NCBI GenBank assembly: GCA_003427395.1
Contig: BFEA01000036.1
Coordinates: forward strand, 243,148 to 307,147
Source: Chara braunii
Lineage: Eukaryota > Plantae > Charophyceae
Direction: 5' to 3'
Length of the DNA: 64,000 bases
The stretch's first letter is position 1; each line of letters starts with the position of its first letter. The position numbers and the translations under genes are program-made. Positions 8,401 through 63,982 of the stretch are shown in pieces. Below the pieces are notes generated by a model. The model made no database searches. It had not been told where the DNA came from and saw nothing but the letters and a program-made list of their open reading frames with translations.

Positions 8401-9388
8401 AAAATTGGCTCTAGATCCCATTTATTGGTCTTGGACCGTCCCTTTGGGCAAACATAGAAAGGGCACTCGCAATATTCACTCACTGACAGTTAGATCAACG
8501 TACCGCATGTTGAGGCCTACACTGGAATTGAAAGATAGAATAGAAACCAGGTGGATGAAACAGCTAAATGTAAGCACGGACAATCTGAGACGTATCAAGT
8601 GGTTCAAAACTATTAAGATTAAACCGACAAGAATTGTCTCCCTACAGTGGCAAATCGACCATCGATGCCTTCCCACGAATGATTGGCTAATAGATAGGAC
8701 CTCGCTGGAAGAGAAGGGTATCGCTCTACCTTGGTGCAAGCTATGCTTCTCAACATTCCCATCTAGGACCATTCCAGAAACCATCGAGCACATCTTTCTT
8801 CAATGCCCAGGTTCAGTTTGGTTATGGCGTTGGTGGGACAAGATTTGGAATTCTTTTAATACACCCATAAACTGGCCTTGGGATTGGCGAGCTCTGTTAT
8901 GCGAGACATGGTCTCCAGACCAATTAGACGATTTCTCCCAAAACCTATTTATAACCGGAAGAAGAGCCATTCTCTGGGCCCTCTGGCAACGGCGCTGTAC
9001 TTTTGAAAGGGAGGGTGCCAGGCTGGATGGTCCAGACTTACGGAGTCCATTAAACTACAGGTGCAAACTGTTATCACAGCTATATGGGACAAAGTGAAAG
9101 AAAAAATACAATTTCTGATGAATAAAAAAGAAATCCAACAACACATCAAATCATTCAGTGGCGAAAGGAGGTACGATTGGAAAGATCAAAGAAAGTGGGG
9201 TGAGGAGAGAGAACAAAGAAGAGCATAGCAAAGGAATTCAAAAAGACTACCACCTGATATTCCATGATTGGACAAATGTGGATCCAACAGTACCACTTCG
9301 CCCTCTATCAGAGTTCCCAGATCCCTTCCCACCCTCATCATTATCCCTAGTCCCCATAAGTTGGTTCGGATACGGAAGAGGAGAATAA
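5498..9388 (+). pseudogene. LINE ORF2: AP-endonuclease C-terminus, reverse transcriptase and CCHC (zf-RVT) region; frameshifted
   Basis: SRIDLILLS/SLDH (APE); KTPGIDGL, NYRPITLL, DFEKAYD, RRGDPIAP, LFADD (RT); CKLC...ETIEHIFLQC. Disrupted near 7470, 7860, 8380 and 9050. Confidence 0.95.
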
Positions 9389-9742
9389 TTGTATGTTGTA
9401 ACCAGCTAAATAACATTGTTGTTTCTGGTGAACAGACAAGGCCGAAGAGGCTGATTTTTGTGGTGGACTAGAAGGGTAGTAGAACTATAGGAAGGGCGGT
9501 TTTTCAGGGTGACAGGGGAATTTGTAGGAAAGATAGGGAGTCTGGAGCGATTGGTCATAGTCTCCAACAAGATATCTGTACGAGTATTTCGGATTGTTTC
9601 AGAAGTGGGATATAAAAGGTAATACTGCTAGGATACCATGGGCATCTGGCGGCCAGGCTCTGGCTGAAGAAGCAGTACTCCTTTTTCTTTATACTTCCCA
9701 TATTTCATGTTCTTGAATCATGTATCACTATTACCTGATTGA

Positions 9743-9853
9743 GGGACGCTGGACCCGTTTTCCAGCAGGTGCAGCTCCCCACCAATAGACTGGAGCCAGT
9801 GGTTGAGCTGCTAGGGGTGGATGCTCATACCAACACCACTAACAATCTCAGCC
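9743..9853 (+). other. Conserved structured LINE 3' end: double pseudoknot plus hairpin
   Basis: GGG-AC-GCTGGA-CCC-GTTT-TCCAGC-A-GGTG-CA-GCTCC-C-CACC-AATAGACT-GGAGC, then a hairpin with TG-CTCATAC-CA apex, directly before the poly(A). Confidence 0.75.
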
Positions 9854-10499
9854 GGTTTTTCTTAAAAAAAAAAATAAAAAAAAATAAAAAAAGAGCCAAT
9901 CATTGTGAAGTTCCATACAACACTACGGCCTACCCTACTGGACCGCCCTGGGACTGGGGACTTGTTGGGACCCTGGGACCGGGACTGGGTGTCTGCCGCG
10001 TGAATCCTTTCACATACACCAACGGTCAGCGCCCTGTGACTGGTCAAACTGACCAGCCGAGCGGTCAGCTGATGGGCACCTACTCGTCGGAGGTTGTCGG
10101 CACCCCGCCAAAAAAAAAAAAAAACCCTGTACTCAAACACCAGCCGGCTAGGTTCCATGACTGAGCAGCACTGAGTAGGTGCTGGGTTCTAATCCCATTG
10201 CCGACACTTTTAGTGGCCTAAGGAGGATGGCCAGGGCCAGTCAACGCTGGTAGCTCATTGGGGTGAGTTGTGCCGCCCTGTAACCTCTGGCAATGTGGGA
10301 GCATCAGGCCAGGTGGAAGTGGCTGCTCAGGTCTAACTGCAGCTGATCGGGACACACCCAATATCTCATCTGGAATTCTCAGTCACAATCATCATAGCTG
10401 ACATTAGCCAATCAGGGTTGAGACCCTGAATTCACTTCAGGGAGCTTAAACTCTCAACATACCTGTCATAACAAAAACTCAATAACCAATAATCATGAC

Positions 10500-16065: not shown

Positions 16066-19000
16066 ATGGGGGACAGCACAAGGAACAAACAACCCAACCC
16101 AAGTCGTAAAACGTGGGGACTCTGCAAGTGGGAGCTGGATCGGAAAATCGTGTCATGGGACATTAATGGCATACCTTCCCTCTTGACCAATCAACGTAAA
16201 TGGGATATCTTCTTAAAAGAATAGGACTGGTTTGAGAAATCACCACCCAATCTACTATGTATTTAGGAAAGCCATTTGACAGACTCAAATGAACACCAGT
16301 CTATCCGAGATCAATTAACTAAAAAACTCAGATGGGTCAAGGAAGTACTATGGGCACCGTCCCCCCACCTGCACTCAGCAGGCGTCATTATTCTGATCCA
16401 TGCTAAAACCAAAGCTTCAAACAAAATACTCACAACCTCGACAAGGATAGACTCTCAAGAAGGCAGATGGGCAAAACTAAATTTCCAGCTTTTAGAAGAA
16501 CACTTTAGACTAATCACCATCTACTGCCCGAACACACTTACCCATAGGAGAAGGTTCCTAGAAAACCTATCCCCCAAATGTGATCCTCACACACACTTGA
16601 TCCTAGCAAGGGACTGGAACGTCACGCTGGACCCAACGAAGGACCACATATCAGGAGGCCAGATGGGTACAAAGAGCACAGCCTGGAATGAGCACTCCCA
16701 ATTCACGACCTGCTAACTGAAAGATTCTCATTGATCCCTACAGAGGTAAGCACCCGGACAGCAAAGAGTTTACATACATCAAAAGAAATCGAAGTCAGCA
16801 CATTTCAGCCTCAAGAATATATGTTTTCTTAGTCACTGAATCACTATTAGGGACTACTAAATGCCAAAATCGAAAGACTTCCTTCCTACACAGGTCTGGA
16901 TTACAAGTTGACCACAATTTCACAAGGCATAGGCATCTCCCCAAATAAAGGCCGCAATTTCTTTAAAATAAACAATTCATTACTACAAACACAAGAAATA
17001 AGGGAAGTCGTAGGTGTTGGGGACTCAGCAGTGATCGGGGAGCCGACGGGAGGCTGCATGCACCAGGTTCAGCCAACTCGCCGACGTGGTGGCCTCGCAA
17101 AACTCACTCAAGACTAGGCTCAGGAGGGATAGAAAAAGCAACCTCAACCATACCCACACATGCACTGTAGGTCTCGTCACAAGTCCGGTGCTACCTGCGC
17201 GCATGCGGCTCGGAGCCCCCCCCCCCCAACTCAGAGTCTTTCATCCCCCGTAGCATCCCTGCTGGGAGGCATGATGCGCCACGGTCAGAGGGGTGTTGAT
17301 AGGGACGATCGACCCTGCTAGGAGAGGGTCGCCCGATCGCTCCCGACGGGACGCCATCACCACTAAGTCCACCCCTTTTAGGGCTGAATCCCCCCATGGT
17401 CTCAACAACCCCGAAGGGAGTAATAGCAACCATTACGGCGCTCAAGGTGCCGCATGGAGTCCGCAGACCCGGACAAACTGAACCTTATCCAATCACATGC
17501 GCCCTTAAGAGCGCTTGGTTGCTACACTCAGTGTGCGAATGACATGTGTGTCCTATTCAAAGCCCGTCGCCGGCATATGCACGAGGCCGTGGAGTTTTGA
17601 ACCCACGCCCTCTGGCCACACATGCATTTCCAACCGTTTCCCTAACCACTGGGCTATCATGCCATTCCCGAAGTTATAATATCAACCTGCATTAAACATG
17701 AAAACTCCAACGCAAAATTCCCCGACCTAGTAATGGCCCTGACAGAAGCAACGGCCAAAACCTGAAGGACCCTTGCAACCAAAAGAAAGGCAAGGGAAGA
17801 GGAACTACAAACGACTTTAAAAATAGCGGAAAAGAATCTCAAGCAATTCAGGTCATAGCCTATACAAAAGAGTACTCGAGCAGACCAGGCAGGAACTATC
17901 GGAATGGGAAGACTGAAGAAACAAGGGACTGCGAATGCGAGCAAGAATAAGAAAATGGGAAGAAGGGGAAATTATGACCAAATATTTCTTCCACAAAATC
18001 AAGACGAATGCCAGGAACACACACATCGACCAACTACGAACGGACCAGGGTTTAACATCCAATCCACAGCAAATCCTAGAATCGGCACCGGCCTTCTTTA
18101 AGGACCTCTACACCTCCAAGGAACAAAACGGTAAACAGCAATAAACAACGCAAGCTAGAAACAAGTTCCTTACCTATCTCGATAAAACAATCTCAACCGA
18201 ACAAGCTGCAACACTAGACACCCCAATCACAGAACAAGAAGTTTACGAAGCACTGCGATCGATGAAACTCAACAAAACGCCAGGTATAGACGGCCTCTCC
18301 AAAGAATTCTGGATGACCTTCTGGCCAGCGCTGGGGACAGAGTGCTTCCAATTCTTGGAAAGAGCGTGGGAGGAAGAAACTCTAGGAGCTCTAAAGTACG
18401 GGGGTGGTCTCTCTCCTATACAAAAAGGGCAACCCGACAGACATTAAGAACTATAGACCAATCTCTCTCCTAACAGTCACGTACAAAATCCTAGCTAAAC
18501 TACTAGCCAACAGAATCAGAACAATAACAGCAAACTGCTTTCACCTGGATCAGACCAGATTCATACCAGGCAGATTCATTCTGGACAACATTATCACCCT
18601 CTCAAAATCTGTAAGATACATTCAAGACAAGAGAATGAACGCAGCCATATTATTCGACTTTGAAAAGGCCTATGACCAAGTCAACTGGAACATCCTTCAA
18701 CAAAGCATGAAAAAGATGGGGGTAGGCCCAAACTTTAGGAAATGGGTCAGAATCCTCTACGCGGATGCCCACAGGCGGGTGCAAGTCAACGGGCATATCT
18801 CCCAGCCCTACCGCATGTCACGCTCAGTACGACAGGGGGACCCACTAGCAGCACATATTTTTTTGTTCATCATGGAAGTGATAGCATCATTCCTACGTAA
18901 GGACCCCTCGATAGAGAGACTCATGGAGGAGGGCCACCACACGATAAGCCTCCCCACCACCATTCTCTTCGCCGGTGACTTAACAATGCAAACGCGCCTC

Positions 19001-21240
19001 AGACTCTTCTTTGAGGCGCTGATGCGAGCAATGCAAGCATTTCAAATAGCTTTAGAAATGAAAATCAATTGGCCCAAGACAACATGATAGTGGTTAACTT
19101 ATCCTCTTACCAATATACCCCTAAGCACACCAGAAGGAATTGAATGGTCCAGACTCCAAAGGCAACCAACCCCTCCATTTCTTGGGCATCCAGGTGTCCA
19201 AGGCAGGACCCAACCACTCAATGGCCCCAACAATTATGTGCAAGATGATCGCCAAACTGGGAAGCTGGTCCAGTATATACACTCCAATCTTCGGACGAGC
19301 CCTAATCCTCAATGCTTCCACCTTCTCCATGTTATGGTACGCAGCGACGATATGGAGCTCCCCCAAGCAACTAAGAACCCAACTCAGAAGGAAAGCGGCA
19401 GCCTACCTCTGGTCCGAGGACCCTTCCAAAGCCCACTTTATCCCCAAAGTAGCGTGGAAGTATATCATCATGAAGAAGTCCAAAGGAGGTTTGGGAGTGC
19501 TCGATCCGGAAACACAAATTAAAGCCCTACAGACGAAATGGATCCTCAAAATCATAACAAATGAAAACCTACCTCGGGTCGAACTAGGTTTGCGTAGAAT
19601 AAAACAGATGGCCAAACTAAAAACTCCGGATAACATGATGGGTCTGTTCTTAATCATGGCCAAATCATGGACCATAAAAAACCCAGACAGCGAAGCGGAG
19701 CAAGAGGAACAGGTCACAGAATATAACCAGGACTTCTGGCAGCAACTCCTAAAAAATTGGAGGGAAATATTCTTAGCCAAAGAACCCACAGCGAAGGAAG
19801 AGGTTCTAAGACAGCCTACTTTCTGTAATCAGTGGATTCTTGACAAGCAGGGGACCTGGACACTCACAGCCAAGGACGCCAAATAGGTCACATGGGTGCG
19901 AAGAGGTGTATGGCAAGTCAAACACCGATGGCAACAGTAAGAGAACTGCGTCCAAACTTGAAGGGCTGTCACAATTTACTGGAGAACCTAAATGACATCC
20001 TAACCTCAATCCCTAACAACTGGCTAGATCTACTATTAAAGGGCCCCTCCCAATGGAAAGCAGGTGACTGGGCCACAAGCACAGCAACTGTGCTTCCAGA
20101 TGTGGCCTACCTATTCCGCAAAAGAGAGGGACCAATGAACACCTGGCTCATCTGTGACATGTACCCAATCGAGGACTCAGGAGCGACCACAAGTCTTCTG
20201 GGCAAGGACCCAACATGGGAGAGAACTTTATCGGACAATGCAGTAAGGAAAATAAGAGTAGTCGAGAATGTACAGCGAAGAATTTATGACCCATCAACCA
20301 GCATACTAGATCTAGAACTCAACCCAGCAGAATGGGCCTGGAAACAAAAAAACAGGAAGGCTCAAACTAGAAAAGCGCACTAACATTTTAGAATATACCA
20401 CAAAACTGGGTTACAACCTAAGAATGAGATATCAACTGATAGCACAGATCAACAGTCATAGATGGGAAACTCAACTTAATCAACCACCAGATCGAACCAA
20501 CATTACGTCATGGAACAAAACTCTCGCCATCGCCTCCACCAAGATACGGAGTTTCCAATGGCAACTTGCATACCTAGCCCTTCCAGTCAACCAATGGTTG
20601 AATAAAAGGCACAGTACGCAGTCAAGACCGCCCCTACAGGAACTGTGTGCCATCTGCCAAGAACGCCTCGTGGAGGATGTGGAACACTGTTTATTGTCCT
20701 GCCAAAAGGCCAAGCAGGTCTGGTCCCGCGCGGCTGAGCTATGGCACTCGAGAACAGGCAACCCTGCCATCGGACCTAGTCCCCACCCTCCTGGGACTCC
20801 ACACACCCTCCGCATGGCTAAACTACGAACACACATTCTTCCACACACTGAAGATTAGCCACCCTCTGGATGATATGGAAACGACGATGCCAAGAAGCAA
20901 TTGGCCACACAACAATGGCAACCCAAGAAACGTGGGAGGGAGTATTAAAACAAGTGGAAGTGGAATACAGAGGACGATGGCACAAAACAGTCTAAATCAT
21001 TGAAAGGAACGTAAAAAACAAAGACAAAATAATATAGCAATTCACAAAACAGAAACTGGGAGATGGAAAAATAGCAACAATCATCAACAACAGAATACTA
21101 TTCGGACAATGGAGACACTGCAATATACAACAACAAACGATCTCGGAGATACCAGGAAGTATAGCATATACCCCAAGTGCGGCAATAGACGCAAGCTAAA
21201 ACCCAAGCATAGATCACCAAAGGTAGGGAAAAGCACGACA
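16066..21240 (+). pseudogene. LINE ORF2 (APE-RT-CCHC), inactivated
   Basis: KIVSWDING, SAGVIIL, IYCPN, RDWNV (APE); KTPGIDGL, NYRPISLL, FDFEKAYD, VRQGDPLA, FAGD (mutated FADD); CAICQ...EDVEHCLLSC. Confidence 0.92.
17013..17669 (-). mobile_element. tRNA-derived SINE inserted antisense into LINE ORF2
   Basis: Minus-strand head GGCATGATAGCCCAGTGG (A box) ... GGTTCAAAAC (B box); degenerate TSD GAAGTCGTA/GAAGTTATA; ORF2 reads across once the insert is removed. Confidence 0.8.
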
Positions 21241-21846
21241 GAAGACAAAGATGACTCCTCGACGACACAATCAGAACAAGGTTATAAGAACAAGGTTATA
21301 AGAACAAGGTTTTAGGATTTAGACAGAGTCAAGGGTTTAGAGGCTAGACAGAGCCAGGGCAAGTGAGGTAAAGATAAACCGAGGATAGACAGACAAAAGT
21401 TCGGGCTTCAGACACTCGGGATAAGCATGGTTTAGGATTCCAGAATCCCAAAAAGTCCGCAAGAGCCCCAGACCGCTCTAGCATAAAACATCGACCCTGC
21501 AGCATTACAGCTGAGAGGAGCAGGACTGCGGCCAAACGGATCAGCAAGGGCCAACCACAATAAGTAGTGCAGGCTAACTTAAGCTGGGGTGAGGGGGGTA
21601 CATCCTTCCACACGGAAGTAATCAATGCCGTCCACTCGGGCCTCCCAGCCATAATGGGAAGGAGTGTGCGTGAGTCTCCGCTGTATTCCATATTGACTTA
21701 CCATGGAATAGGGACCAGGAGCCAGAACCATGAGGTTCTGTTCTATTAAAAAAAAAAAAAAAAGGAAGGGCTCTACCTAATTTCACCACTTCATTCGTAG
21801 GCAAACTGTGTGAAAAAAGGCAAGGAAAGATCACCTCCAGAGTTTT

Positions 21847-32540: not shown

Positions 32541-35500
32541 AACCCTTGGTTGTCCCTTGGAATGCCCCCCCAAAGCATCCCCAGATCTCTCTACCAGGCC
32601 TCACGCTCCTGCAATCAGCAGGTTACAGGGCAACACCCCAGCACCGGCCAGCGTCGTTCTGGCATCGAACAAACGCAAATCCATGAATGTACCAGTATGA
32701 AACAGCCTAAAGGGAGTTGCTAGAAGTCCCCAGAATCCTAAAGCATTCTCTTTTTTTGCTAAGAAACAAAAACATATGCACAATTCAGAAAACAAACTCA
32801 GATACCAATCGATTCCCTATACCCCACTCCGGCAAGACTTACTGCAGCAGAGCCACCATCTCTGCTGCTGATGTACCCTATTCCCATCCTAGTAGGACGC
32901 GTGATATCCCACCATCTCCTCTCCCACTCACCTCGATCTCTTTTTTGAGATACCGGGGCCATTACCCAGCCTCGGCTTGAGAAAATGTCTGAGAATACTT
33001 GCGATAATTCAGAAAACATGAGAATAGACCACAGCGGTCCTACAAATGCTCAAAACCTCGAAGTCCCTAACTAACCCTTCCAAGGCTCTCCAACATTGTC
33101 TTACTCCCTCCCGAGCTCTTCCAGGCGTCACACCCCCACATCCTGTTGGGTTACAGGGCAACACCACTCACCCCAGCTCCAGCCAGCGTCGTCCCAGCAG
33201 CAACCCTTGGTTGTCCCGTGGAATGCCCACCCCAAAGCATCCCCAGATCTCTCTACCAAGCCTCACGCTCCTGCATTAGCAGGTTACAGGGCAACACCCC
33301 AGCACCGGCCAGTGTCGTTCTGGCGCCGGACAACCACAAATCACTGAGTATAACAGCATCGAAAACCACCTGAGACGAGTTGCTAGGAGTCCCCAGAGTC
33401 CTAAAACATTCTTAAGACCGCCGAGCCTAAAAACAGGAAAAAAAAATAACGAAAACCACCACCGATCCAGCTCTTTCCCCGCACTACAGAGGAGAGACTT
33501 GCCCAGGCGTTCGGTCCTCGTAACAACACTCGCTAGATCTCATACCCCCCTTGCTAGAGTGACAGAGCAACACCAACTGCCCCAGTACTGACCGAACTGG
33601 TTCTGACGGACAGGAAGTGTCTTCCTCCCTCGACAACTTCCTTAGCTGCAGAGCCCCCGAAGGTTACAGGGTCACTGCCCCGGCCTCAACTACGTTGGAC
33701 AAGATCGTTATGCCTTCCTCCCTCGACATAGCTCCAATAGTCTCAAGCTCCCCCTGGTTACAGAGCACTTGCTCCAGCACCGGCCATTGTCGCCCCATCC
33801 CGCCCTTCTAATTAGACCTACCATCCTAAACCACAAACCCTCCTTTGTCCGAGCATCACCACACTACCCAGCAATCCCTAGGACCAGCTTTCCCCTTCCT
33901 GCTTAAGAAAAAAACAAGATAGGACATGAGTAACACACAAAAAAGAAAAGCAAAAAGTCCGAACTGGAACCACCGACTTGCAACCTTCCTCGCAACTCTT
34001 GAAGAAAACCAAAGGCCTCGTAATCAGTCCTCGATCTTACACACAACTGGTCTCATACCCTCCTATGCCAGGGTTACAGGGTACCACTATGCCCCGGTGC
34101 CGACCAAGCTAGTATAGACGGTAAGGAATGCCTTCCTCCCTCGACATCTCCCATCAGTCGCACGCCCCTGATGGTGACAGGGATAAAACCCCGGCAACTG
34201 CCACGTCGAACGTGCTGGTTCTGCCTTCCACCCTCGACATAACTCCCCAAGCCTCACACTCCCCCAGGTTACAGAGCAACGCTCCACCACCGGCCTGCGT
34301 TGTCCCAGCCACGTGACCTACTAACGAAGGCCAAGCCCCCCCCCTGCTGCACCCCCCATTCATACTTCTCACCCGTCAGTGTGAACCATCTGCTTCCCTT
34401 AATCATGTGTGTTTTCCATAGACAACTAAGTACAAGTTAGATCTAAAAAATTCCTTGGTATAGAGAACTAAAGCCAGACAACAATGATAGTACTAAAAAG
34501 GATTAGGATTTTAAACCAATATCAAACAATCAGAAAATTGAATCGAAACACACCGAAACTGAAATTTCAAGATCAGAAAAACGAGACTGAGTTAAGATTT
34601 TGAAAATTTCTTGTAAGAAATCAGAGGTGCAAAAACCTCTGATTTTACGAATCTCAAACTAAAGAGGATTACCCAGGTAGTAATTCAGCAACAAAAATAC
34701 GACAGTCGACATGACTAATGATGTGAAATTCAAAAGAAATAAGCAAACAAAATAAGTCAGAATTAGGCAAACAAACTAGGTCACGATTAATCTTGATGTA
34801 ATCTTGGTTATCAAACCTCATAATCAAAATTCTTATACCTAAAAATTCAAGGATAAAAAAACTAATAGGTATTGAACCAGATGAAACTATCTTGGAATCA
34901 CATCGTTAAGAATCTCATCATGGTCATCACAGAATCTCCACTACAAAACGTGAAGACGAATAACACAACTGTTAGGATGACAAGGCAACACTAACTGCCC
35001 CAATACCGACCGAGCTGATTCTGACGGTCAGGAAGTGTTATTCTCCCTCGACAACTTCCTTAGCTAAAAAGTCCGTAAGGTTACAGGGTCACTGCCCTGG
35101 TTCAGCTGCGTTGAGCAGGATGGCTATGCCTTCCACCCTCGGCATAGCTCCAATAGTCTCAAGCTCCACCCCTGGTTACAGAGCACCTACGCTCCAGCAC
35201 CGACCATTGTCACCCCACCCTGCCCCTCTAATTAGACCTACCCCATGAACACTAATCCCTCTTCTGCCCACGTACCCACCACACTTGCCTAGCAACGTTA
35301 GAACCAATCTTCCCCTTTCTGCTATCCGGCGTCAACTACAATTATACTAGCAAGAATTTCAAAAAAACTAAGAAAAATCAAGCACACAAAATCCTAGAGA
35401 AGCACATGAACATTTAAGCGCACAAAATCCTGAAGAATCACATGAACATTTAAGCGCCCACTGCTCCCACAGGGAGAGGGGAAGAGGGGGAGAAGAACAA

Positions 35501-36060
35501 CCCTCTCTCCCCATGGAAACTTCAGCGCCTATTGGAGTCTCGGATACATATAAAAGGGGTCACAAGAGCCAAAGTGATTACTCCCCTCCTCCAAAAAACG
35601 ACTCCCTGTTTGTTTACTACCTTCGCGGGAAGGCGCCCCCTCACCTCCCCGCCCCAGTTCAGAACAACCCCAGGATACCCCTCCTGCTTCCTCAATCGCA
35701 TACAATACCCCCTAGAGTATGCCCCCACAGAGCAAAAGATCCCCCTATCTACTTGCCCCACCCCCTTCAAGTGGAACAGTCCTCTCAACTCTCACCCTGC
35801 TTACGTCAGCACCCTTTGTCCTCTCTCCCCAACCGCCATAGTTGATCCGACCCGAAAATCAGCGTGGCCCAAAGAAGGACAGACCCTCAATACCGTCCCT
35901 ACCCTCTCAAAGGTCATACCACCCACCTTGTGTAACCCTCGCAAGGAAGGACTCCAACCCTAAAGGAGATATCCACTCCAACACCTCTGACCTCGATCTC
36001 ACAACATCACAGTTGAGACTCCCTTGCAAGACTAACTACTTGAGTAAAAACTGGTTAGCA
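32541..36060 (-). mobile_element. Long non-coding repeat element with a tandem array of ~12 SRP Alu-domain-like modules
   Basis: Modules centred on TTACA/TGACA (+ strand) near 32625, 33152, 33285, 33562, 33665, 33759, 34075, 34176, 34270, 34979, 35082 and 35178; homologous in reverse orientation to 50270-51878. Boundaries uncertain because of the gap. Confidence 0.75.
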
Positions 36061-38823
36061 TCGAATTTAGAAAATCCATCGAGATAGAGGTAAGATGGGA
36101 ATGAGAGAAATTGCTCAAACAGTAAACCTGGAATCAAAAGAAGTTTGAATTATGAATTAAGCCTCAAATTCAAGAAATTCACGAAATCAATCACAATGAA
36201 GATAATATTGAAAATACGATTTGATAAGATTTGAGAATCCAAATAGGGAACAGAATAGGGAATCAATTTTGATCTCCGAACGACTTACGACTCTGATTTC
36301 CAGAGCCCAAGGTTCAAGAAATCGCTCAGACAGTAAACCCGGAATACTAAGTAGAAAAAAAAATTGACAATCAATTGAGTCGGGAAATACTAAGCAAAAA
36401 AAATGAATCGACAATCAATTGTGTACGAGTGAAACCATAAAACAGATCACGAAATCAACAAGAAAAATTACGAACTACTGATTGAGATCAACTAAAAAAT
36501 CAGAATTCCATCCAAAAAATTACCTTCTAAGAAGTTCCCGTATCAAGAAAAAAAACAACAACAAAATTAGGGCATGCCTCAAGAATTACTGGAGATCATG
36601 TCGCTGCGTGAAGTCGCCTTGAAACGCCTGAAGTCTTAATTCGTGCAGTCCATCACGTAGCGCTCCACTCTCGCTATCCCCTGATCCAGTTGCCCCGCTG
36701 CTGTAGAGTCCAAACTCAACCCCTGCCTCTTCCTGCAGGAGCAGCACGTTCGCCTCCCCATAGCCCGTGCTAATATAGCCCCTTGGCCAGCCACACTGAC
36801 CAGAAGAGATTTGGTAGGACACAATCACATCCCTATCACTGCCATACGTGATTGCATTGTGAGTAACCACGCCAAGCCTGTTGACGCCACCTCACAAAAA
36901 GTCCAGTCCCTACCCAACGAACCAGAGGCCACTAAATCAAGAAGGATAGACGGAGTAGAAAAGCTAGTATAGGAAATCCCCCACCATCAAGCCCCCGCTC
37001 GCCCCACCCACCTTCTCCTCGACACGATTCCACACCGCCACAACCGACGACCTGCCACCGCTCGTCCCCCATTGCACGCCGTAGCCGTTTTACACCCATC
37101 GTGCTACTTCGCACCGGTCGTCCACGATTCGCGCCGCGCCGCGCTCGCCTCGCCACGCCGTGGTGCACCGTGCTCCTGTGAATCCTGCACCGGACCTGGA
37201 CGGGGCGCAACACTCCCAGCCGCGCTGCAGCCCCCTAGTCGCAAAATCTGATGATGTTTTGCAGTCACACTTTCCCCCCACCCCCAGCAAAATCACAAAC
37301 AGTGTAGTCTTTGTCAGCGGCCTGGTGGGCCGCGGGGTTCAGCAAATTGCGAGGAAATCGCATTTGACTTTCGTCAAAAAAAAAAAAAAAAAAAAAAACC
37401 CTCCACCGGCCAGAAAACGCAACTTCGTGCCTACTACAGTCCAAATTGCTATGTTCGGTTGCCAACGGGACAGTCATACAACGCCTGTGTCATTTTTGGC
37501 TTCGCGCACAACAAAATGCCTAATGGGTTTGTCCGTAGTGGAGGAGTCCCTTCCGCCCCCAGGTGAGTTTCGTACCCACTTGCGCTGCCCTTCCACCCTT
37601 CTCCGCAGTTTCTCCCCCCGTTTCCACATGCATTAGTCTTGCCCTCCGCAAGATTAGTCAGGCCCTCCGCAAGAATAGACGCAGATTCCGCTGCCCTCTG
37701 CGCAGTTTCAGGGCTTGAATGAGCACATATATGCGGGCAGGTGCAAAGAACCGTGCTGCCAGCTCTTTTTCTACCAGGGCTTGAACGAGCAGATGTATGC
37801 GGGCAGGTGCAAAGAACCATGCTGCCAACTCTTTTTCTGTCTCTCAGCACATGGTAACGTGGATTCGAGTGCTTGGCCGATCGAAGCGGTACCACAGTGG
37901 CTGCTGCCAGGCGAACCCTTTGAAGCATACTTGCAAGCGGACGCTGTCCGCGCGGTTCCGAAAGTGCGGCGGACTGTCGGACCCGACTCCTGCGGCGCAC
38001 GAATGCGCGCCCGACGACCACCTCCAAAAAAAAAAAAAAAAACAGGGGTCGGAACAAAAGTTTTGAGGCCCCTTACGAAAAATGCGACCGGTGCCGCCAA
38101 TTTTTTTTTCAGCTTGCGCTCAAGCCCGGACCTCCTTGGGGTTTTGAAATTTGAAACCCTATTTCAGGGCACACTTGGTTTCGCGCCGTCCTGCCCGTCG
38201 CCATTCGCCAGCCATCTGCTGTTCGCGCCGTCCTGCCCATCACCGTTCGCCACCCTACTGCGTCGCCGTTCTGCCCGTCGCCATCTTGCCTATCATTGCT
38301 GCCGTTGAGGAGGAGGAGCAGCCCATCCCGCCTGTCGCCATACTGCTGTCCCCGACGGTGAGTGTCACCAGCCCATCGTCCTCCTCCCCCTCATTCTCCT
38401 CCGCTGCTCCTCCTCCTCCTCCACCTCCCCCTCGTCTCCCCCCTCTTCTGGTTCTCCTCGTCTCCCCCCTCTTCTGCCTCTCCTCGTCTTCGTCCTCCTC
38501 CACACTTCCTCCTGCCGTCATCCTGCCCATCCGCTTCTCCTCCTCTTATCCCTCGTCGTACTCCTCTCCATCCTCGCCGTCCTCCTCACTTTTGTTCTCC
38601 TTCCCCCCCCCACCTCGTCGTCCTCCTCTCCAGCCCGTCGTCTTCCTCCTTCCACTCGTTCTCCTCACTTTTGTGTCCATCCCCCATCATGGTAAGGTAC
38701 GGGTGCATTGCAAAGATGGAGTCCAGCTGATGGCTGGGATGTTTCGCAATATGTTTTTGTCATCGTCCTTCTTGGAGACACACCTTCTTGGAGACTCTCT
38801 CTCTCTCTCTCTCTCTCTTTGTG

Positions 38824-38883
<60 letters not shown>

Positions 38884-39119
38884 NNNNNNNNNNNNNNNNN
38901 NNNNNNNNNNNNNNNNNNNNNNNNNNNNNNNNNNNNNNNNNNNNNNNNNNNNNNNNNNNNNNNNNNNNNNNNNNNNNNNNNNNNNNNNNNNNNNNNNNNN
39001 NNNNNNNNNNNNNNNNNNNNNNTACTTCGATTGATAGGATGAGAAAAATCAATTGTACGGGTGTGAAGAACATGGAAAGGACGATGACAAAAACATAATG
39101 CGAAACACCCCAGCCATCA

Positions 39120-39905
39120 GCTGAACTCCATCTTTCCTCCATCCCTCCTCCATCTCTCGTCCATCTCTCCTCCATCTTTCCTCCATCCCTTCATCCCTCC
39201 TCCATCTCTCCTCCATCTCTCCTCCATTTGATCCCTCCTCCATCTCTCGTCCATCTTTCCTCCATCTTTCCTCCATCCCTCCTCCATCTCTCCTCCATCT
39301 TTCCTCCATCTCTCCTCCATCTCTCCTCCATCTTTCCTCCATCTTTCCTCCCATCTCTCCTCCATCTCTCCTCCATCTCTTCTCCATCTCTTCTCCATCC
39401 CTCCTCCATCTCTCCTCCATCTCTCCTCCATCTCTTCTCCATTTCTCCTCCATTTTTCCTACATCTCTCGTCCATCATTCCTCCATCTCTCCATCATCTC
39501 TCGTCCATTTCTCCTACATCTGTAGTACACTTCTCCTCCATCTTTCCTACTATACACCCATCTCTCCTCCATCTCTCCTCCATCTCTCGTCCATCTCTCC
39601 TCCATCCCTCCTCCATCTCTCCTCCATCTTTCCTCCATCCCTCCTCCATCCGTCCTCCATTTCTCCTACATCTCTCCTCCATCTCTCCTCCATCTTCCTC
39701 CATCTCTCCTCCATTTCGCCTACATCTCTAGTCCATCTCTCCTCCATCTTTTGTTCGTCTTTCCTACTATTGTCTCCAATCTCTCCTCCATTCCTCCTCC
39801 ATTTCTCCTCCATCTCTCCTCCATCTTTCCTCCATCTCATGTCCATCTCTCCTCCATTTCTCCTCCATCTCTCGTCCATCTCTCCTCCATCTCTCCTCCA
39901 TGCCT
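39120..39905. repeat. CTCTCCTCCAT-type minisatellite inside the hAT element
   Basis: Degenerate ~11-bp unit array. Confidence 0.95.
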
Positions 39906-39986
39906 CCTCTATCTCTCGAAGAGAACGATAGAGTACAGGGTGTACATGTGGAGCGGGGCTGATATTCTGGCTGGGTGCCAGTCATC

Positions 39987-42796
39987 ATGTCGGGCCGCAA
40001 GTATAAAGCCAGCCTTGTCAAGCGCCATTTTGATGTCCTTGGCCCCGCGGGTAAGGATCCTTCGAAGGGGGGAAAGTGGTGGCTCTACCATTACTGCGAT
40101 CAAAATTTTTTTGGCAATCTCAATTGCCTGAAGGAATATTTCACGAAGAGGATTTGCGCAGTTGAGAAATCAACAAAAACATTGACCGCAGAGGAAATAT
40201 TGAGAAAGAAGGAAGGATTGCGGCAGGCAAGGATAGACTCGGGCATGCCGAGGGATTGTGCCAATGCCCTACCTACTGTCAGCAGTTTGGTGGCTGCTTC
40301 TATGGGCGGGGGTTTGGTCAAAGAGGTGGGCTACGCTTGTGGCGAAGCGGCGAGCGACGCTTGTGACGAAGGGGTGGGCGGCAGCGGGCCAAGTGTCACG
40401 GCGCATCGCACAGGTGCATCTGCTGCACCTGCTGCACGGATGCGATAGATGGTGTTGGAGGAGACCGACAGCGTCGTCACAAAGAATGAGCAGACGTCAA
40501 GAAGAGTAGACTGCTGGATGGCGTGCACGAACCAACCATTCAACATGGTTGAGAACGAGTTCTTCAACGACATGGTGAACGCCATACAATAGGCCCACCC
40601 ATCATGGAGACTGCACTCGAGAGAGGCGGCGCGTAATGGTCGATTGAACGGACAACACCAGAGGGCGATCGAGGACGTGGGGAGGTTGGCGAAGAAGTGG
40701 GCTCGCACAAGCTGTATGGTGCAAGTAGATGGGTGGTCTGACCGACGGGGAAGACCACACGTAAACGTCATGGTGTCCTCTCCCATCGGCACCGTCTTTT
40801 GGAAGTCGGTGTGCGTAGCGGGAAAGGACAAAGACGCCAGTGCGTACTACAGAATACTCACCGCTGCGATTGAGGAGATTGGCCCAAGATGCGTGGTTGG
40901 GGTGATCATGGATAATGCCCGAGTTTGTGTGAAGGCCGGGAAGTTGGTGGAGAAAAAATACCCGTGGATATTCCGGGTGGGTTGCGCGGCGCATGCCCTT
41001 GACCTCGCATTGGAGGACATGGACAAGCGCATTCCGTGGTTTGCGGAGACTGTGAAGAGGGGGAATGTGTTGGGGAAGTTCGTGATGAACCACGACAAGG
41101 TTCGAGCACTCTTCTTGACCAAATCGGGTGGTGTGCAGATTAAGAGGCCGGGCGTCACTCGATTCGCGACCAACATCATCATGTTACAGTCGCTGTGGGA
41201 CAGGAGAAACGCCCTGAAATTGACTGTGGCTGCCAGCGGGTGGGTCTCCTCCATAGTGCCGCCCCACTTGCGTTCCCAATTCGAGGAGGTGACGGCGACT
41301 ATCTTGGATGGCGGCTTTTGGGAGCGGGTGGACAAGGCCTTGAGGACCACGGACCCCATCGTAACGCTATTGAAGCTCGTCGATGGTCCAGACGCAACAA
41401 TCGCCAAGGTTTATCATCGAATGGATGGTGTGGTGGAGTCAGATTCGCGAGCTGGACATCTTGACAGACTTTGAGAAGGCAGAGGTCGAGTCGATCCTCA
41501 TGGATCGATGGGCGTTCATGACTTCAGAGTTGCACTGTGCAGCAGCCTTCTTGGACCCGGAGTACAGATCGCAGGGCTCCTTCAAAGACACCGGGATCCG
41601 AGCCGGGTTCAACATCTGGTTGTACACCCGGTGCACGGATGAGATGTTCAATGATGGGAGCTGGCAGGTTGACGAGTGGGTGAATTTGAGGGGGGCCTTG
41701 CAATCAGAGGAAGCTTTGCGTGCAACACGCACCAAGACCCCGACGATGTGGTGGGAAGCGTTTGGCTCGCGGCTGCATCTTTTGCAGCCCCAAGCGATCA
41801 GACTGTTGGGCCAGGCAAGCTCATCCGCGGCATGCGAACGCAACTGGAGCCTGCATGAGCTCGTTTTTGGCAGGAGGAGGACGAAGCTAATGCCCACCCG
41901 CCTATCAAAGCTCGTCTACAACAATTGGAACCTCCACCTGCAATGGAGGCAAGAGCACGGTCGTGGTGAGGATGATGTCCACATTCCGTGGGTGAAGGAA
42001 ATGCCAGAAGCCGAGTTGAAGGAGGAGGCAGAGCAATTTTACAGTGATTGAATGAAACGGGTGAAGAACAGCACGCCGAGTGGCGGGAATGATACATCAG
42101 ACAAGGAAGACGAGTCGGAGGACGACGACGATGGTGAGGAAATGCCTATGGCAAGGAGGTGGTTGCGCAATGACGAGGTGGACAATGCAATGGACCAGGC
42201 GGAGGGCCTTGCGCACATAGATAAGTACACGAACGACTGACACTTCAACACTTGACCGTGGAGGCAGCTGGAGCGAGCCTTGCGAAGGTTGTCGGGCCAC
42301 CAGCGCCCAACACTTGAAGTGCGGTATAACAAGGAGGACCGGGAGCTTGCACTGCGGGCTCGACAGACGGGCAATTGGGTGGAGGGTCGGAGGCAGCAGG
42401 CAACGTAAAGTGCCACGCGATGATGAGGATCGTCGTGACGGTAAACGTGCTGCGGAGGAGGACATTGCACCTCCCGAGAAATAAAGGAGAGGGCGGCCGA
42501 CCAACAAAGAGGTCGCAGCAAGAAAAGCAGCAATGCGAGCTGAGAAGAAAAAGGCAGCGTTGGAAGCATCGAGAAAAAAGAAAACTGCTGGAAAGAAAAA
42601 AGCAGCAGCAAAAACAAGAAAGAGGGACAACATCATCGACGATGACGGCACAGAAGCATGTTCATCGTCTTCAACTTCATCAGAGGAAGGGGATGATGAA
42701 GATCATGATGCCAACACAAAGGGAGGAGGAAGAGGAAGGGGAGGGGGAAGAGGAAGGGGAGGAGAAAGAGGAAGGGGTCGCAAAGGAAGAGGGTGA
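39987..42796 (+). pseudogene. hAT transposase (degenerate BED finger, DUF659-type RNase H fold, dimerisation domain)
   Basis: QVDGWSD, MDNA, CAAHALDL, TRFAT, AAAFLDP, SSAACERNWS; premature TAG/TGA codons and a frameshift near 41440. Confidence 0.93.
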
Positions 42797-43163
42797 GACT
42801 TCTGCACGGGGAGGTGCAGAGGATTAGGAAATTTAGGCGGAGTTGATGCCGCTGGGTGAGACTTCTGCACTGGGAGGTGCAGAGGATTAGGAAATTTAGG
42901 CGGAGTTGATGCCGCTGACAGCAAAGTTTGCAGTTTCGCGGTTTATCTTTCGATGTTCGGTTGAACTTAGAACAAAGTAAGAACTGTGAACTACAACTTC
43001 TAGAAAAACGATGTTGCTTTACAAAGATGCTAAATTTCAACAACGCTGGATCTCTGGGATGAAATCATTGAATCCTAAATTTTCGGAACAGATTGACTTG
43101 ATATTGCAATCAAAACAAAAACTCAGAGAATGATATAGTCCATTTTTGATTTAAATTCAAAAT

Positions 43164-43322
43164 GACCCTGGTAGTCCATGCCGTAAACGATGAGTGTTGG
43201 TCCTTGGTCTACGCCCGGTGGTTTTTGGGGGCGATTCGATGAGGGACCTAGCTAACGCGTTAAACACTCCGCCTGGGGAGTACGGTCGCAAGGCNGAAAC
43301 TCAAAGGAATTGACGGGGGCCN

Positions 43323-43355
<33 letters not shown>

Positions 43356-43430
43356 ACAACGCGCAAAACCTTACCAGCCCTTGACATATGAAAGAAACTC
43401 CTCGTAAGAGGTGTACTTTGACTTCATACA
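43164..43430 (+). pseudogene. rrn18: Nuclear insertion of a mitochondrial SSU rRNA fragment (NUMT)
   Basis: GACCCTGGTAGTCCATGCCGTAAACGATGAGTGTT...AAACTCAAAGGAATTGACGG...GATACAACGCGCAAAACCTTACCAGCCCTTGACATATGAA...TTCATACA, plant-mitochondrial signature variants of the universal 16S motifs. Confidence 0.9.
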
Positions 43431-45001
43431 AAGTTGTAGTTCATCTTCTCATCATCAGTAAAGTAACTCAAGTTAAGTCTTTGAGTTGAACAAAGTAAGA
43501 ACTGTGAACTACAACTTCTAGAAGTTGTAGTTCATCTTCTCATCATCAGTTAAGTAACTCAAGTTAAGTATTTGAGTTGGCATTTTGTCCATTCCTCCCG
43601 TGTTGCAGTGTGCGTGCGTGGTTTTCTGTCATTTGCCCAATTGCAGTGTGCTGTTTTGCTGGCTATGCAGTGTTTCTGTGTCTGCATCAGGTAACAAGTA
43701 ATAACAAGTTAACAGGTGAGTACCCTGCCACACTGCCTGCCCCGCCAATGCAATTGCTACAGTCACGACACCGTCACTTGTTTCATAAGACGAGTCTTGT
43801 GCGTACCCCCCTACATTTGCCAATAGTTCGCAACTTCGGACCCCTCAGAGGTGTGCACTCCCCACCAACAATGCCCCCCACCCAGCGGAACCTCAAAAAA
43901 AAANNNNNNNNNNNNNNNNNNNNNNNNNNNNNNNNNNNNNNNNNNNNNNNNNNGCGGGGAAGGCACCGCTCCAGTCCCGGACCAAACCGCACCGGACAGA
44001 AGAGTACCGCGTCGTACCCCATCTGGCCCCGTCCGGTCCGGTCCGGTCCGGTCCGGCTCTGTCCGGTCCGGCTCTGTCTGCTTGCAAGTATGCTTTGAAG
44101 TCATGCCCGTGCGGGCCCAAATGTTATAGGAAAAGGGGGAAAAAAAAAAAAAAAAAAAAGACATGAAAAGTTGAAAGCCCAATAAAAAATATTCCACCAT
44201 CTGCTATCAGCTGTGTGACCACGCTAATACCAAATGGACCAATTTTCAGCAAGTTGGGGCGATGTATCATTCACAAAGGCAGCCGTGTGTGAGTACGCAC
44301 CACAGCTAAACCTCAAAATCGCAGTTGCAAAACTGCAGATGGAGCCTCTCCTCCGGTGGTAGTGCTGTCTGCTCTTATCAGCAGCACTAACACTGAAAGG
44401 GGTGTTCTTCTAAAAACAAAAAAAAACAAAAAAAACAAAAAAGATTATGCAATTTTGCTATTCATGTGTGAGTATGCCCTTAGGGTGATAAAGTGCTCAC
44501 ACAGCATCCAGACAAACGATAGAGGTACAACTGCAGGGCCCTCCAAGGAGTATACCTCCCCGTGGGGAACAGGGGCCATTGGTGGAAGGCAAAAAGAAGA
44601 ACCAGATGTGGCAGCTCGGAAGACTTGAACACACGGATAGTAAGACAGGGGACAATATGTAAGAGATCTGCCAAGATGCTGGCAGGGACTGGATTAGTCA
44701 ATTAAATCTGTACGGACAGAGAGGACTCGGTGCACCCCTGTTGTGAGGGGTGAGCAGTTAATCCACTCTTAGGACAAATAATGCTAGCCACCACACAAGT
44801 CTGTTAACTTCGCTTCGCTGTGTATTTGTTGTTGTACAAAGGGGAAGGACCCGGTTTCCAACAGGTGAAGCTCCCCACCAATAGGTTGGAGTCGTCACAC
44901 AGAAGGCCTACTACAGGCGGTTGAATGTATCACCTCCAGTAATAGGCCTTCAACAGATTCTTTAAAAAAAAAACAAAAAAAACAGCAGGTTGAACCGTTG
45001 A

Positions 45002-50269: not shown

Positions 50270-51745
50270 TCCCCAAATAATTCCCTCACTAATTTTTTTG
50301 TAAAGTCATTCTGACATCATCACCATCATCATCACCATCATCTGTTTATAAATTCATTATTTAGTATTCTTCATCACTATCATCTAACTAGTTTATTTCT
50401 CCTCATAGGCTTTAAAGTCAGATATGGCGAGAAGGTAAGTGGATTAAAGGTGGGGCGAACTCTACTCTACAAAGGAAGCGCAAGGAGAGAGGTGCTAACC
50501 TTCGAGGGAGTACAGGCAGACAAGGGGGAGTGTTCTAGTTTGGGGCTGGGGAAGATCCCAGTGGTGGCAGATTAGGGCACAGCTAGCTTGAGATAATCAC
50601 TGGGGGGAACTGATTACTCAAGGGAGTAAAGGAAGAGGAGATGGCTTTCTCTCGCTGGGGCTGAAGGAATTTAACTGTTTGCAGATCGATTCCACTCAGC
50701 GGGGGCAGCACAGAGAGAGGAGGAAAGGAAGAGGGGGGAAGAGGCAGGGGAGGAGAGGGGAAATTGAATCTACATCAAGGGTCATCATCAAAAGCAGCAG
50801 CATCTACATAGTTAGTTTTTTCAAAAAAATCCTCTGATTGCGTTTTATTGGAATATGAGAGAAGGTAAGTGGGAAAGGTGGGAAAACTGAAACTCTATAA
50901 GGGCATCGTAAGGTGGGAAGTGATGCTCTGTTAGGAGTGGAAGTAGATGGGGGATTGCGCTAATCTGGGGCTGATAATCCAGCGGGGGCAGATTAGGGCA
51001 ACAGCTTGATTGGGTCATACTTTGGGGGGAATGGTAGGACCTAATGGTGAGTACTGTTGTAAGGGGGACTGTCCCAGGTTGGGGCTGAAAAACGACTACT
51101 CATCAGGGAGGTTCATTTCAGCGGAGGCAACAAGGGGCAAGAAGGAACGGTGAGGGGAAGAGGAATAGAATCCATATCTACTGACGTCAATCATTATCAT
51201 CACCACCCTCATCAGATACGTCATCTGCTGGGGACTCAACTAAATCATATCCTTTATTTTTAGGTATTATTATCAATTTTGCTGATTGTCTGATTGAGTT
51301 GTGAATGTGCACTTGCCTAGGTCAAGTTGATGCCAGAACGACGCTGACCGGTGCTGGGGCATTGCCCTGTAACCTAAACTACTAGGAGCTTGAGGTCTTG
51401 TAGAGAGTTATGGGGATTGCTGAGGGAGGAAGGCAGTCCACTAATTTGACAGACGGTAACAATCCTGTCGACGATGGTCGGAGCTGGGGCGGGTAGCGCT
51501 GCCCTGTAACTTAGCTAAATAGAGGGTGTGAGACTGGGTAGAGGTGGGATTGATACACAGCACAACATCAGATGACAATTGCTGGAATTGGTAGAAATAC
51601 CTGGAATTAGGATAGGGTCCCATGTTGTAGTTCTGAGTAGAGAACATTCTGATTAGCCTTCCTTATCACTCTTCCTTATTGGCTAGTACTTAGAGTGTGA
51701 CTGCTCAGATCATGATTCTGATTAGCAGAAAATCATCAGTTTTAG

Positions 51746-56069: not shown

Positions 56070-57110
56070 GACTTCTGAGACCTGGAAAGATCCTGAAAGA
56101 TATAGTATGCAACCAATAGCAAAACACCTGAAATCTGCTCTAATTTGCTCAAACCAACCCGCTGGTTTAAGGAGTATAAGCTAAGGCCTGCAAAAGTCTC
56201 CTCGCTCCAATGGCAGGTTGCCCACCGCTGCCTCCCAACCAGTAACTGGTTGATTGACCACAAGAACCTAGAGCAGCAGGGGCGGTGCTATCCAGAGCAG
56301 AAGTGGCTGGAAACCGTAAAGCACATCTTCTTACAGTGCCCCACAGCTTTGTTGACATGGCGCTGGTGGCAAACAGCCACGGGACTGTAGGGCCCTCCTT
56401 ACAGGCCACTGCCCCTACTTTGGTGATGAACAGATCAAAGAAAATATGTTCTGGAAAAAAAAACAAAAAAGGGTAGACGATCGGTCCTCTGGGTCTTATG
56501 GTGGCAGAGATGTATTATGGAAATGGAGGGGCAAGGGTAGAGGTAGGAGAGGTTGCTGATCAAATCAAGCAACTTGTCTAAGCCGAGATCGGCAACCAGT
56601 GGCGGCCAGCCAAGGGATAAAGACGCCACCATCAGCCGTTTTTGTGAAGATTAGCTGGGGGAAAGGCGGGGGGTTGGATGGCGGAGGCGATTTGGGCAGG
56701 GGATACCACCCAGCAGCCACCAGCAGTGGAGGACCAGCTGTGGGACAAGGTTGCCAGGGACTACAGGGTGCTCTTTCATGATTGGACAGCAGTCGATCCC
56801 AACGTGCAGCTGAGACCTCCCTTGGATTTTATGGACCCCCCACACCTATTTTCCTTAGTAGAGGTCCTGCAAGAAAGCGACTGATCGGCTTCATGACTTC
56901 CTGTGCTCGTATCCTGCAAGGAGGCTGACCAGCCTCATGGTTTCATACAACTCATCTGAGGGGCGTTCTGGGGATGCTGGGCGCGGTGCCGAGCAATCTA
57001 CACATGCTGTGTACCAAGGGACGCCGGACCCGGTTTCCAGCAGGTGCTGCCCCCCACCAACGGATTTAAGTATGCAGGTTTGGTCTCCAGCAGGTGCTGT
57101 TCCCCACCAA
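56070..57110 (+). pseudogene. LINE C-terminal fragment and 3' UTR
   Basis: SLQWQVAHRCLPTSNWLID, VKHIFLQCP, YRVLFHDWTAVDP; pseudoknot module at ~57018. Confidence 0.85.
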
Positions 57111-63876: not shown

Positions 63877-63982
63877 GATCCTTCGGGAGATACGCTAAAA
63901 TTGGAACGATACAGAGTCTGAAGATTAGCACGGCCCCTGCGCAAGGATGACACGCGTAAAACGAGGACTGGTCCGAACTTTT
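63877..63982 (+). ncRNA. U6: Full-length U6 snRNA variant, probably a pseudogene (4-nt insertion in the ACAGAGA box)
   Basis: GATCCTTCGGGAGA...AAAATTGGAACGATACAGAG[TCTG]AAGATTAGCACGGCCCCTGCGCAAGGATGACACGC...TTTT. Confidence 0.92.

Follow-up and report, generated by a model that had tools for sequence, protein, structure and literature searches.

Organization of the module locus

The window, that is the whole 64,000-nucleotide stretch of Chara braunii DNA analysed here, is a mosaic in which LINEs are mixed with a hAT element and with short repeats that have poly(A) tails. Examination of its minus strand between positions 32605 and 35198 revealed twelve UGU(A/C)A cores, with the first U at 35180, 35085, 34982, 34273, 34179, 34078, 33762, 33668, 33564, 33288, 33155 and 32627. 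Nine of them belong to intact three-way junctions, one to a mismatched junction and two to decayed ones. A previous sequence-only reading of this DNA had described about twelve minus-strand modules with one fold in a plant lineage; the lineage is Chara, the count agrees, and the five examples it had quoted are all found where it had placed them. Its description of a tandem array needs correcting, as the arrangement is not simply tandem and consists of three-module units (A, B and C) and a second unit type (D and E).

Units A, B and C have diverged and are mutually 70-80% identical, a module and its adjoining purine-loop hairpin recurring with a period of about 93-105 nt. Unit A contains A1 (35163-35198), an intact three-way junction with short loops and an 8-bp outer helix, followed by A2 (35073-35100) and A3 (34969-35004), both of which have lost the closing helix; A3 is of a long-loop type and is truncated at the point where a further element copy begins with its 5' part. 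Unit B comprises B1 (34258-34288), the lone mismatched module, with a G-G in its closing helix and an outer helix bearing compensatory changes relative to A1 and C1, together with B2 (34164-34195) and the long-loop module B3 (34057-34098). Unit C is made up of C1 (33747-33778), C2 (33653-33684) and C3 (33544-33586), the last again of the long-loop type and with a possible 5-bp loop-loop pairing. The second unit type is represented by the two modules of unit D, namely D1 (33267-33303), which belongs to a high-copy subfamily, and D2 (33132-33177), a long-loop module, and by unit E, which enters an assembly gap below 32541 and is cut by it after its first module, E1 (32605-32642). All of these lie on the minus strand.

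The locus is not one array but a rearranged succession of several element copies, because a 3' tail stub (32941-32986, minus strand) breaks at an A6 run (32941-32946), ahead of the terminal hairpins shared with LINEs, and because a piece of the 5' body (34800-34970, minus strand), matching positions 8024-8211 of L047, a homologue on scaffold BFEA01000984.1, re-emerges within the locus. This piece cuts A3 and marks a junction between element copies. DNA contigs join the monomers in other orders too.

A separate pair of modules, F1 (51353-51389) and F2 (51483-51527), lies on the plus strand with a purine-loop hairpin, and a CAT repeat and a poly(A) tail are found downstream. Upstream of the pair, two related G-rich units (50400-50800 and 50850-51230, plus strand), 69% identical over 180 nt, both start with a canonical 5' splice-site-like motif. 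A probable single long-loop module, G1 (10255-10300, plus strand), has a B-box-like motif upstream and was missed by the covariance model at E<1. At 56340-56417 on the minus strand, two back-to-back descriptor matches with UGUAA and UGUCA cores occur in unrelated sequence, where the covariance model did not recover them.

The motif GUAGGUC, which resembles a 5' splice site, occurs 30-40 nt upstream of every three-module unit, including that of L047 (approximately 35229-35235, 34316-34322 and 33815-33821 in the window, minus strand). Splice-like motifs flanking the units would suit a cluster of RNAs hosted by introns, but no splicing was seen and no RNA splice joints were listed for the reads; this reading is not supported.

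Structure of the modules

Each module measures 31-46 nt. Its 3-bp closing helix opens onto an unpaired G, the first hairpin, the UGUNR core and another hairpin; the strand that completes the closing helix comes last, and NUGAG usually stands behind it. In a set of twenty modules, taken from three loci in the window and from L004 and L005, U-G-U is invariant (20/20), the fourth core position can be A, C or U, and a purine always occupies the fifth (20/20), an invariance that is partly built in since modules were collected by their UGU core; a degenerate copy at 1326-1350 of L004 has no UGU core. The junction G is kept in every module aligned or parsed. The topology proposed in the sequence-only reading, a three-way junction with helices 2, 3 and 4 and an invariant junction G and UGU as in the 5' Alu domain of SRP RNA, was thus recovered.

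A strict descriptor of the fold gave seven matches on the minus strand of the window and none on the plus strand, and when applied to 300 dinucleotide shuffles it gave a mean of 0.05 and a maximum of 2. A covariance model built from 12 modules recovers further modules. In the alignment fitted to this model, 94.8% of the cells are paired and 7 of the 11 core pairs show double-sided change; none of 500 shuffles matched the observed pairing and covariation, and slid registers reached 42-61%. Such an alignment is structure-fitted and its sequences are related, so these values lean in favour of the fold and no further. A cleaner test than covariation in a fitted alignment is provided by two held-out modules on another scaffold, outside the model, which score 33.1 and 29.8 bits (E-values of about 1e-7 and 1e-6, respectively). 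One-sided changes to G-U weigh little, because transitions dominate among the copies, and imposing the junction fold costs 1.4-14 kcal/mol relative to the free minimum. The earlier remark that differing stems make one fold is strengthened by the compensatory changes, which affect both sides of the 7 core pairs and, as described below, of outer pairs as well.

An outer helix encloses the module: the strand 5' of the closing helix, past a 3-nt GGN linker, pairs with the strand that follows NUGA. In this register 87% of the cells are paired over 4 bp, against at most 67% on other diagonals, and shuffling of Watson-Crick partners gives p values of 0.010 (4 bp) and 0.002 (6 bp). Among first-position modules both sides have changed in 4 of 8 pairs, the distal pairs being weak, and the middle modules B2 and C2 do not follow the register. 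The equivalent strand of SRP RNA, downstream of helix 2, has a distant partner, the far 3' end, with which it forms helix 5 (Rfam structure line); the topology of the outer helix is therefore that of a circular permutant.

Pairing between the two hairpin loops is not significant over all modules (p 0.19-0.26), and kissing loops were rejected as a general feature; short-loop modules have loops too short for a loop-loop pseudoknot. In ten long-loop modules the last five bases of loop 3 match the start of loop 4 in 45 of 50 pairs, compared with 13-31 in slid registers, with some double changes and a partner-shuffle p of about 0.03-0.04 for a subtype picked post hoc. These values are suggestive of a 5-bp loop-loop pairing in the long-loop modules only.

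Between modules lies a covarying purine-loop hairpin with an 8-bp stem and the loop GAGGGWGGAA, in which 53 of 64 stem pairs form versus 43.7 in partner shuffles (p 0.002). The copy downstream of A1 is at 35123-35148; further minus-strand copies were located at 35032-35058, 34218-34243, 34126-34150, 33707-33732 and 33614-33640, and degenerate ones at 33220-33243 and 32559-32581. The outer helix, the purine-loop hairpin, the composite locus and the module-less short relatives described in the next section are additions to what the sequence-only reading contained.

The carrier element and its copies

Upstream of the units, the 5' non-coding body (35453-36346, minus strand) is 79% identical over 934 nt to that of L047, in which the order of parts is the body, one three-module unit, a segment matching window positions 32820-32933, a structured tail and poly(A). 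That segment (minus strand in the window) forms a second high-copy part, which precedes the tail in L047 and is also present in module-less short elements of L005. On its sense strand, the L047 element has no stop-free run longer than 71 codons, and the carrier has no ORF, in line with the non-coding repeat previously proposed. The 5' body also holds, on the minus strand, a GC box at 35647-35655 and a TATA-like box at 35545-35555. Both are conserved in the window and L047, where the first module follows some 450 and 350 nt downstream of them, respectively, and they may act as a promoter. No properly spaced pair of A and B boxes, as in pol III heads, was found before or inside the units, and the modules sit more than 1 kb inside the shared body.

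L004 contains an element of the D type; it is 85% identical to unit D and, like L047, ends in the family tail and poly(A). Over its last ~55 nt, this tail shares 85-88% identity with the 3' ends of L1/Tx1-like LINEs (window 9743 and L001 13671). The link to LINEs drawn in the sequence-only reading therefore finds its basis in a 3' tail common to LINEs plus poly(A) in the L004 and L047 copies, of which the window copy keeps a stub. Most family reads run on into the LINE-type tail (loose ends at 32945), unlike the window copy. In L005, an element of ~340 nt (50535-50870, minus strand) has a hairpin-rich front, a LINE-type tail and a long poly(A) and no module; modules are dispensable for mobility, because such short elements with the same tail exist without them. 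At 567-745 of L004, the poly(A) of one copy adjoins the tail of another that runs in the opposite direction. The ends of this contig also repeat its first 95 nt, and together these features suggest a nested insertion or a collapsed tandem repeat.

The family is a non-coding, non-autonomous non-LTR retroposon in all respects bar target duplications. Target-site duplications and the 5' end were sought in L047, which is interrupted by a hAT element, and in the window copy, which is bordered by a gap, and none was found.

Two L1/Tx1-like LINEs with broken ORF2 and differing 3' tails lie on the plus strand of the window (5498-9890 and about 16900-21770). The ORF2 of the former (5498-7498) has its best matches among Chara braunii proteins (60-66% identity), and its terminal hairpins are common to the module-bearing element. 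Candidate modules in LINE 3' UTRs (9100-9866 and 20858-21750, and in L001) are not supported, the loose matches at 9364 and 9502 not being recovered by the model. For the hAT protein of the window, 15 of 15 homologues come from Chara braunii. The hAT elements at 37926-44092 in the window and at 8215-13731 in L047 are bounded by terminal inverted repeats of 12 bp and a target duplication of 8 bp; the duplications differ, making the two insertions independent, and each is situated next to or inside the 5' part of the retroposon family, whether by chance or through a target preference. The modules are not hAT cargo: they are found outside both hAT elements, each of which is flanked by an 8-bp duplication of its own. 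In ~200 kb, six sequences resembling U6 or U2 score above the Rfam threshold (63878-63982 in the window; 8885, 11180 and 39509 in L005; 18569 in L006; 8067 in L007), which suggests snRNA-derived repeats or many retrocopies. At 33560-33700 of L005 (minus strand) and 10130-10305 of the window (plus strand), a tRNA-like head with A- and B-box-like motifs is immediately followed by one Alu-like module; these are possible tRNA-plus-Alu chimeric SINEs, comparable to the Tu type of tree shrews.

Abundance and transcription

Family copies are present on other scaffolds, dispersed and in high copy number. Summed DNA depth, which does not equal copy number, amounts to 1.3e5-2.2e5 in the D1 and E1 bins, 4e3-2e4 in unit C and 65-400 in the spacers, and DNA reads cover all 30 bins. 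Three module sites were found in 315 kb of other Chara DNA, or about 1 per 100 kb in a transposon-rich sample. For a genome of about 1.5 Gb, this density would correspond to module sites of the order of 10^4.

In two oligo-dT RNA runs from one study, first mates in the module bins lie 9:1 and 26:1 on the plus strand and therefore represent module-strand (sense) RNA, given the usual stranded library. The same bias could reflect oligo-dT priming on genomic poly(A) in read-through RNA, and no piles of read starts or ends were listed. Less than 1% of the RNA reads are 99% identical to the locus; the RNA therefore comes from other copies or another strain, and the signal is one of the family.

Relationship to SRP RNA and SINEs

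Binding of SRP9/14 requires the G4/U23/G24 triad of SRP RNA (PMC12265939), whose UGUNR motif was defined previously (PMC4605306). Judged by their sequence, the invariant bases of the modules correspond to this triad together with UGUNR. In one study, G24C/G25C mutants still pulled down SRP9/14 from lysate, and the triad is therefore an imperfect predictor of SRP9/14 binding.

Searches with Rfam SRP models, the check that had been suggested for each module, turned out unfavourably. The best match, to D2, covers positions 1-72 of Metazoa_SRP with 21.2 bits, far from the 70 bits needed for gathering; its E-value is 7e-4 for a selected stretch of 221 nt and 0.26 for 4 kb. At the gathering threshold no SRP match exists in the window or in L004-L007. 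The match is confined to those model positions, with no S domain (helices 6 and 8). The module locus is thus no SRP RNA gene (Rfam CL00003), and the element, having neither a 5' 7SL head nor an internal pol III promoter, is no member of SINE1. No tRNA genes were predicted by ARAGORN.

A metagenome pattern match, L003, lies within a prokaryotic gene region and was discarded as chance, leaving L004 as the only true metagenome copy. Also regarded as chance are 37 viral pattern matches, which were preselected by pattern, occur one per contig and reach at most 21 bits with the model. The module pattern was not found in bacterial or archaeal genomes.

SINEs derived from 7SL are known from Euarchontoglires and hagfish (PMC7245038), and the previous statement that they occur in animals only holds in the accessible literature. 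In that literature, with most subscription papers and Repbase outside its scope, no Alu-domain modules in mobile elements of plants or algae and nothing relevant on Chara non-LTR elements were found; reports of Alu-domain modules in mobile elements came from vertebrates only.

Proposed function and alternative explanations

The modules are probably minimal SRP Alu domains, taken from 7SL RNA and then multiplied. We consider it somewhat probable that they act as SRP9/14-binding devices which dock the RNA on ribosomes and aid its capture by LINEs. Transcription, possibly by pol II, would proceed from the GC/TATA region and yield a long RNA, every module of which would bind one SRP9/14 dimer through its G-UGU U-turn. 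The bound dimers would then attach the RNA to ribosomes, among them ones engaged in the synthesis of LINE ORF2p, where an L1/Tx1-like reverse transcriptase may recognise the LINE-type 3' hairpins and poly(A). Several modules could confer greater avidity, and the outer helix, as a circularly permuted helix 5, may close each module locally and let it fold in the middle of an RNA with no need of a 5' end.

Several published observations make such a role plausible. In human cells, the 46-nt 5' domain of Alu is necessary and sufficient for SRP9/14 binding and retrotransposition, and it also works embedded in pol II transcripts, less efficiently than at the 5' end (PMC12199147). The module length of 31-46 nt fits binding of SRP9/14, because the minimal binding Alu domain is of 46 nt. 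The SINE1 of hagfish represents a second, independent origin of an Alu domain combined with a LINE-derived tail (PMC7245038), and Arabidopsis carries genes with SRP9 and SRP14 domains (PMC3610429). The fuller scenario would be that Chara, independently of vertebrates, evolved a non-SINE retroposon whose arrays of permuted minimal Alu domains recruit several SRP9/14 dimers, dock on ribosomes and are captured by an L1/Tx1 machinery, possibly from pol II transcripts, with the module also placed on tRNA-like heads elsewhere; we advance it tentatively, at a little less than even confidence.

The three-way junction might instead serve another partner or role (scaffold, nuclease block, export, or binding of ORF1p or ORF2p), as a convergent structure or a repurposed 7SL fragment. 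Other covarying modules, such as the purine-loop hairpin and the tail hairpins, abound in Chara retroposons, the Rfam SRP scores are weak, the topology of the outer helix is unlike that of natural SRP RNA, and a loop-loop pseudoknot is impossible in short-loop modules. The last point loses force as Plasmodium Alu RNA lacking the pseudoknot still assembles with SRP9/14 (PMC8137916), and the invariant bases would be exactly those of the SRP9/14 triad and UGUNR, with NUGAG after the closing helix, near the layout of Rfam Metazoa_SRP; another partner thus seems rather unlikely. A neutral relic, in which the 5' part of 7SL was captured once and spread by tandem duplication and template switching, would have inherited its structure and acquired its wobbles through transitions. 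Transitions indeed dominate the differences between copies and turn G-C or A-U into G-U with no selection, decayed modules occur (two in the window and one in L004), and copies derived from U6 and U2 are common in the Chara genome. A relic would not be expected, however, to show both-sided changes in 7/11 core and 4/8 outer pairs or loops and helix lengths that vary freely around a fixed junction, and a plain 7SL 5' fragment cannot supply the outer helix, all of which makes neutrality distinctly unlikely.

That the RNA acts as a sponge or delivery vehicle for SRP9/14, altering host translation or being kept by the host for that purpose with mobility secondary, is suggested by the multiple modules per RNA, by the polyadenylated and sense-biased family RNA, and by human Alu RNPs, which reportedly deliver SRP9/14 to 40S subunits and inhibit translation (PMC4357698). 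With ~2000 family reads among 16 million, many of them tail-only, the RNA in those samples seems much too scarce to titrate SRP9/14, and there is no conserved single locus, the window copy being rearranged and partly decayed; we regard this role as very unlikely. The module strand is G/T-rich, which favours wobble pairs, and an assembly gap borders the locus, so that the fold might have arisen by chance in G/U-rich repeat DNA or through an artefact of assembly. The shuffle controls, the held-out modules on another scaffold and the DNA reads over all 30 bins leave this explanation scarcely credible, and for the fold chance is already refuted.

If the modules do bind SRP9/14, the Alu trick would have arisen three times independently, with Chara as its first case outside vertebrates in the literature found, and ribosome docking through SRP9/14 would be a general route for capturing LINE reverse transcriptase. 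Thousands of natural, minimal, internally folding and multimerised Alu variants would then make the docking model testable, for instance by relating module number to copy success, and could serve as compact components for RNA-templated gene insertion, as proposed in PMC12199147.

Comparison with known systems

With the 5' Alu domain of SRP (7SL) RNA (CL00003; RF00017), the modules share the order of helix 2, junction G, helix 3, UGUNR and helix 4, the G4/U23/G24 triad, a size of 31-46 nt and, in long-loop modules, a possible loop-loop pairing. Unlike SRP RNA, they have no S domain, occur many per RNA and are internal rather than 5'-terminal; the strand after NUGA pairs just upstream of the module and not with a distant 3' end, the loops of many modules are too short to kiss, and the score is 21 bits against a gathering score of 70.

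The Chara element would, by inference from these likenesses, resemble the Alu domain of SINE1 in its working. Like the L1-mobilised SINE1 elements (primate Alu and rodent B1), it is non-coding, poly(A)-tailed and presumably LINE-dependent, and, like dimeric Alu, it has more than one Alu-type fold per RNA. It differs from SINE1 in having no pol III A/B box head, a length of more than 2 kb, two to three modules per unit and more per locus, a structured LINE-derived tail and a streptophyte alga as host. The hagfish SINE1-1_EBu is likewise an independent Alu-domain element with compensatory changes and the tail of its partner LINE, but it is a SINE of 282 nt, transcribed by pol III, that has just one Alu domain, at the 5' end, along with clear 7SL identity and an RTE partner (PMC7245038), whereas the Chara modules are internal multimers with an L1/Tx1-like partner.

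In SA46/AY46, a 46-nt 5' domain within a pol II transcript suffices for SRP9/14 binding and L1-driven retrotransposition; these are laboratory constructs, and their authors considered that a promoter-less fragment could not succeed in evolution (PMC12199147). The Chara element would be a natural counterpart of them. SVA is a long composite non-coding retroposon, transcribed by pol II and mobilised by L1, whose own Alu-like part is antisense. The Chara element is also long, composite and non-coding; unlike those of SVA, its Alu-like modules are sense-oriented and structurally maintained.
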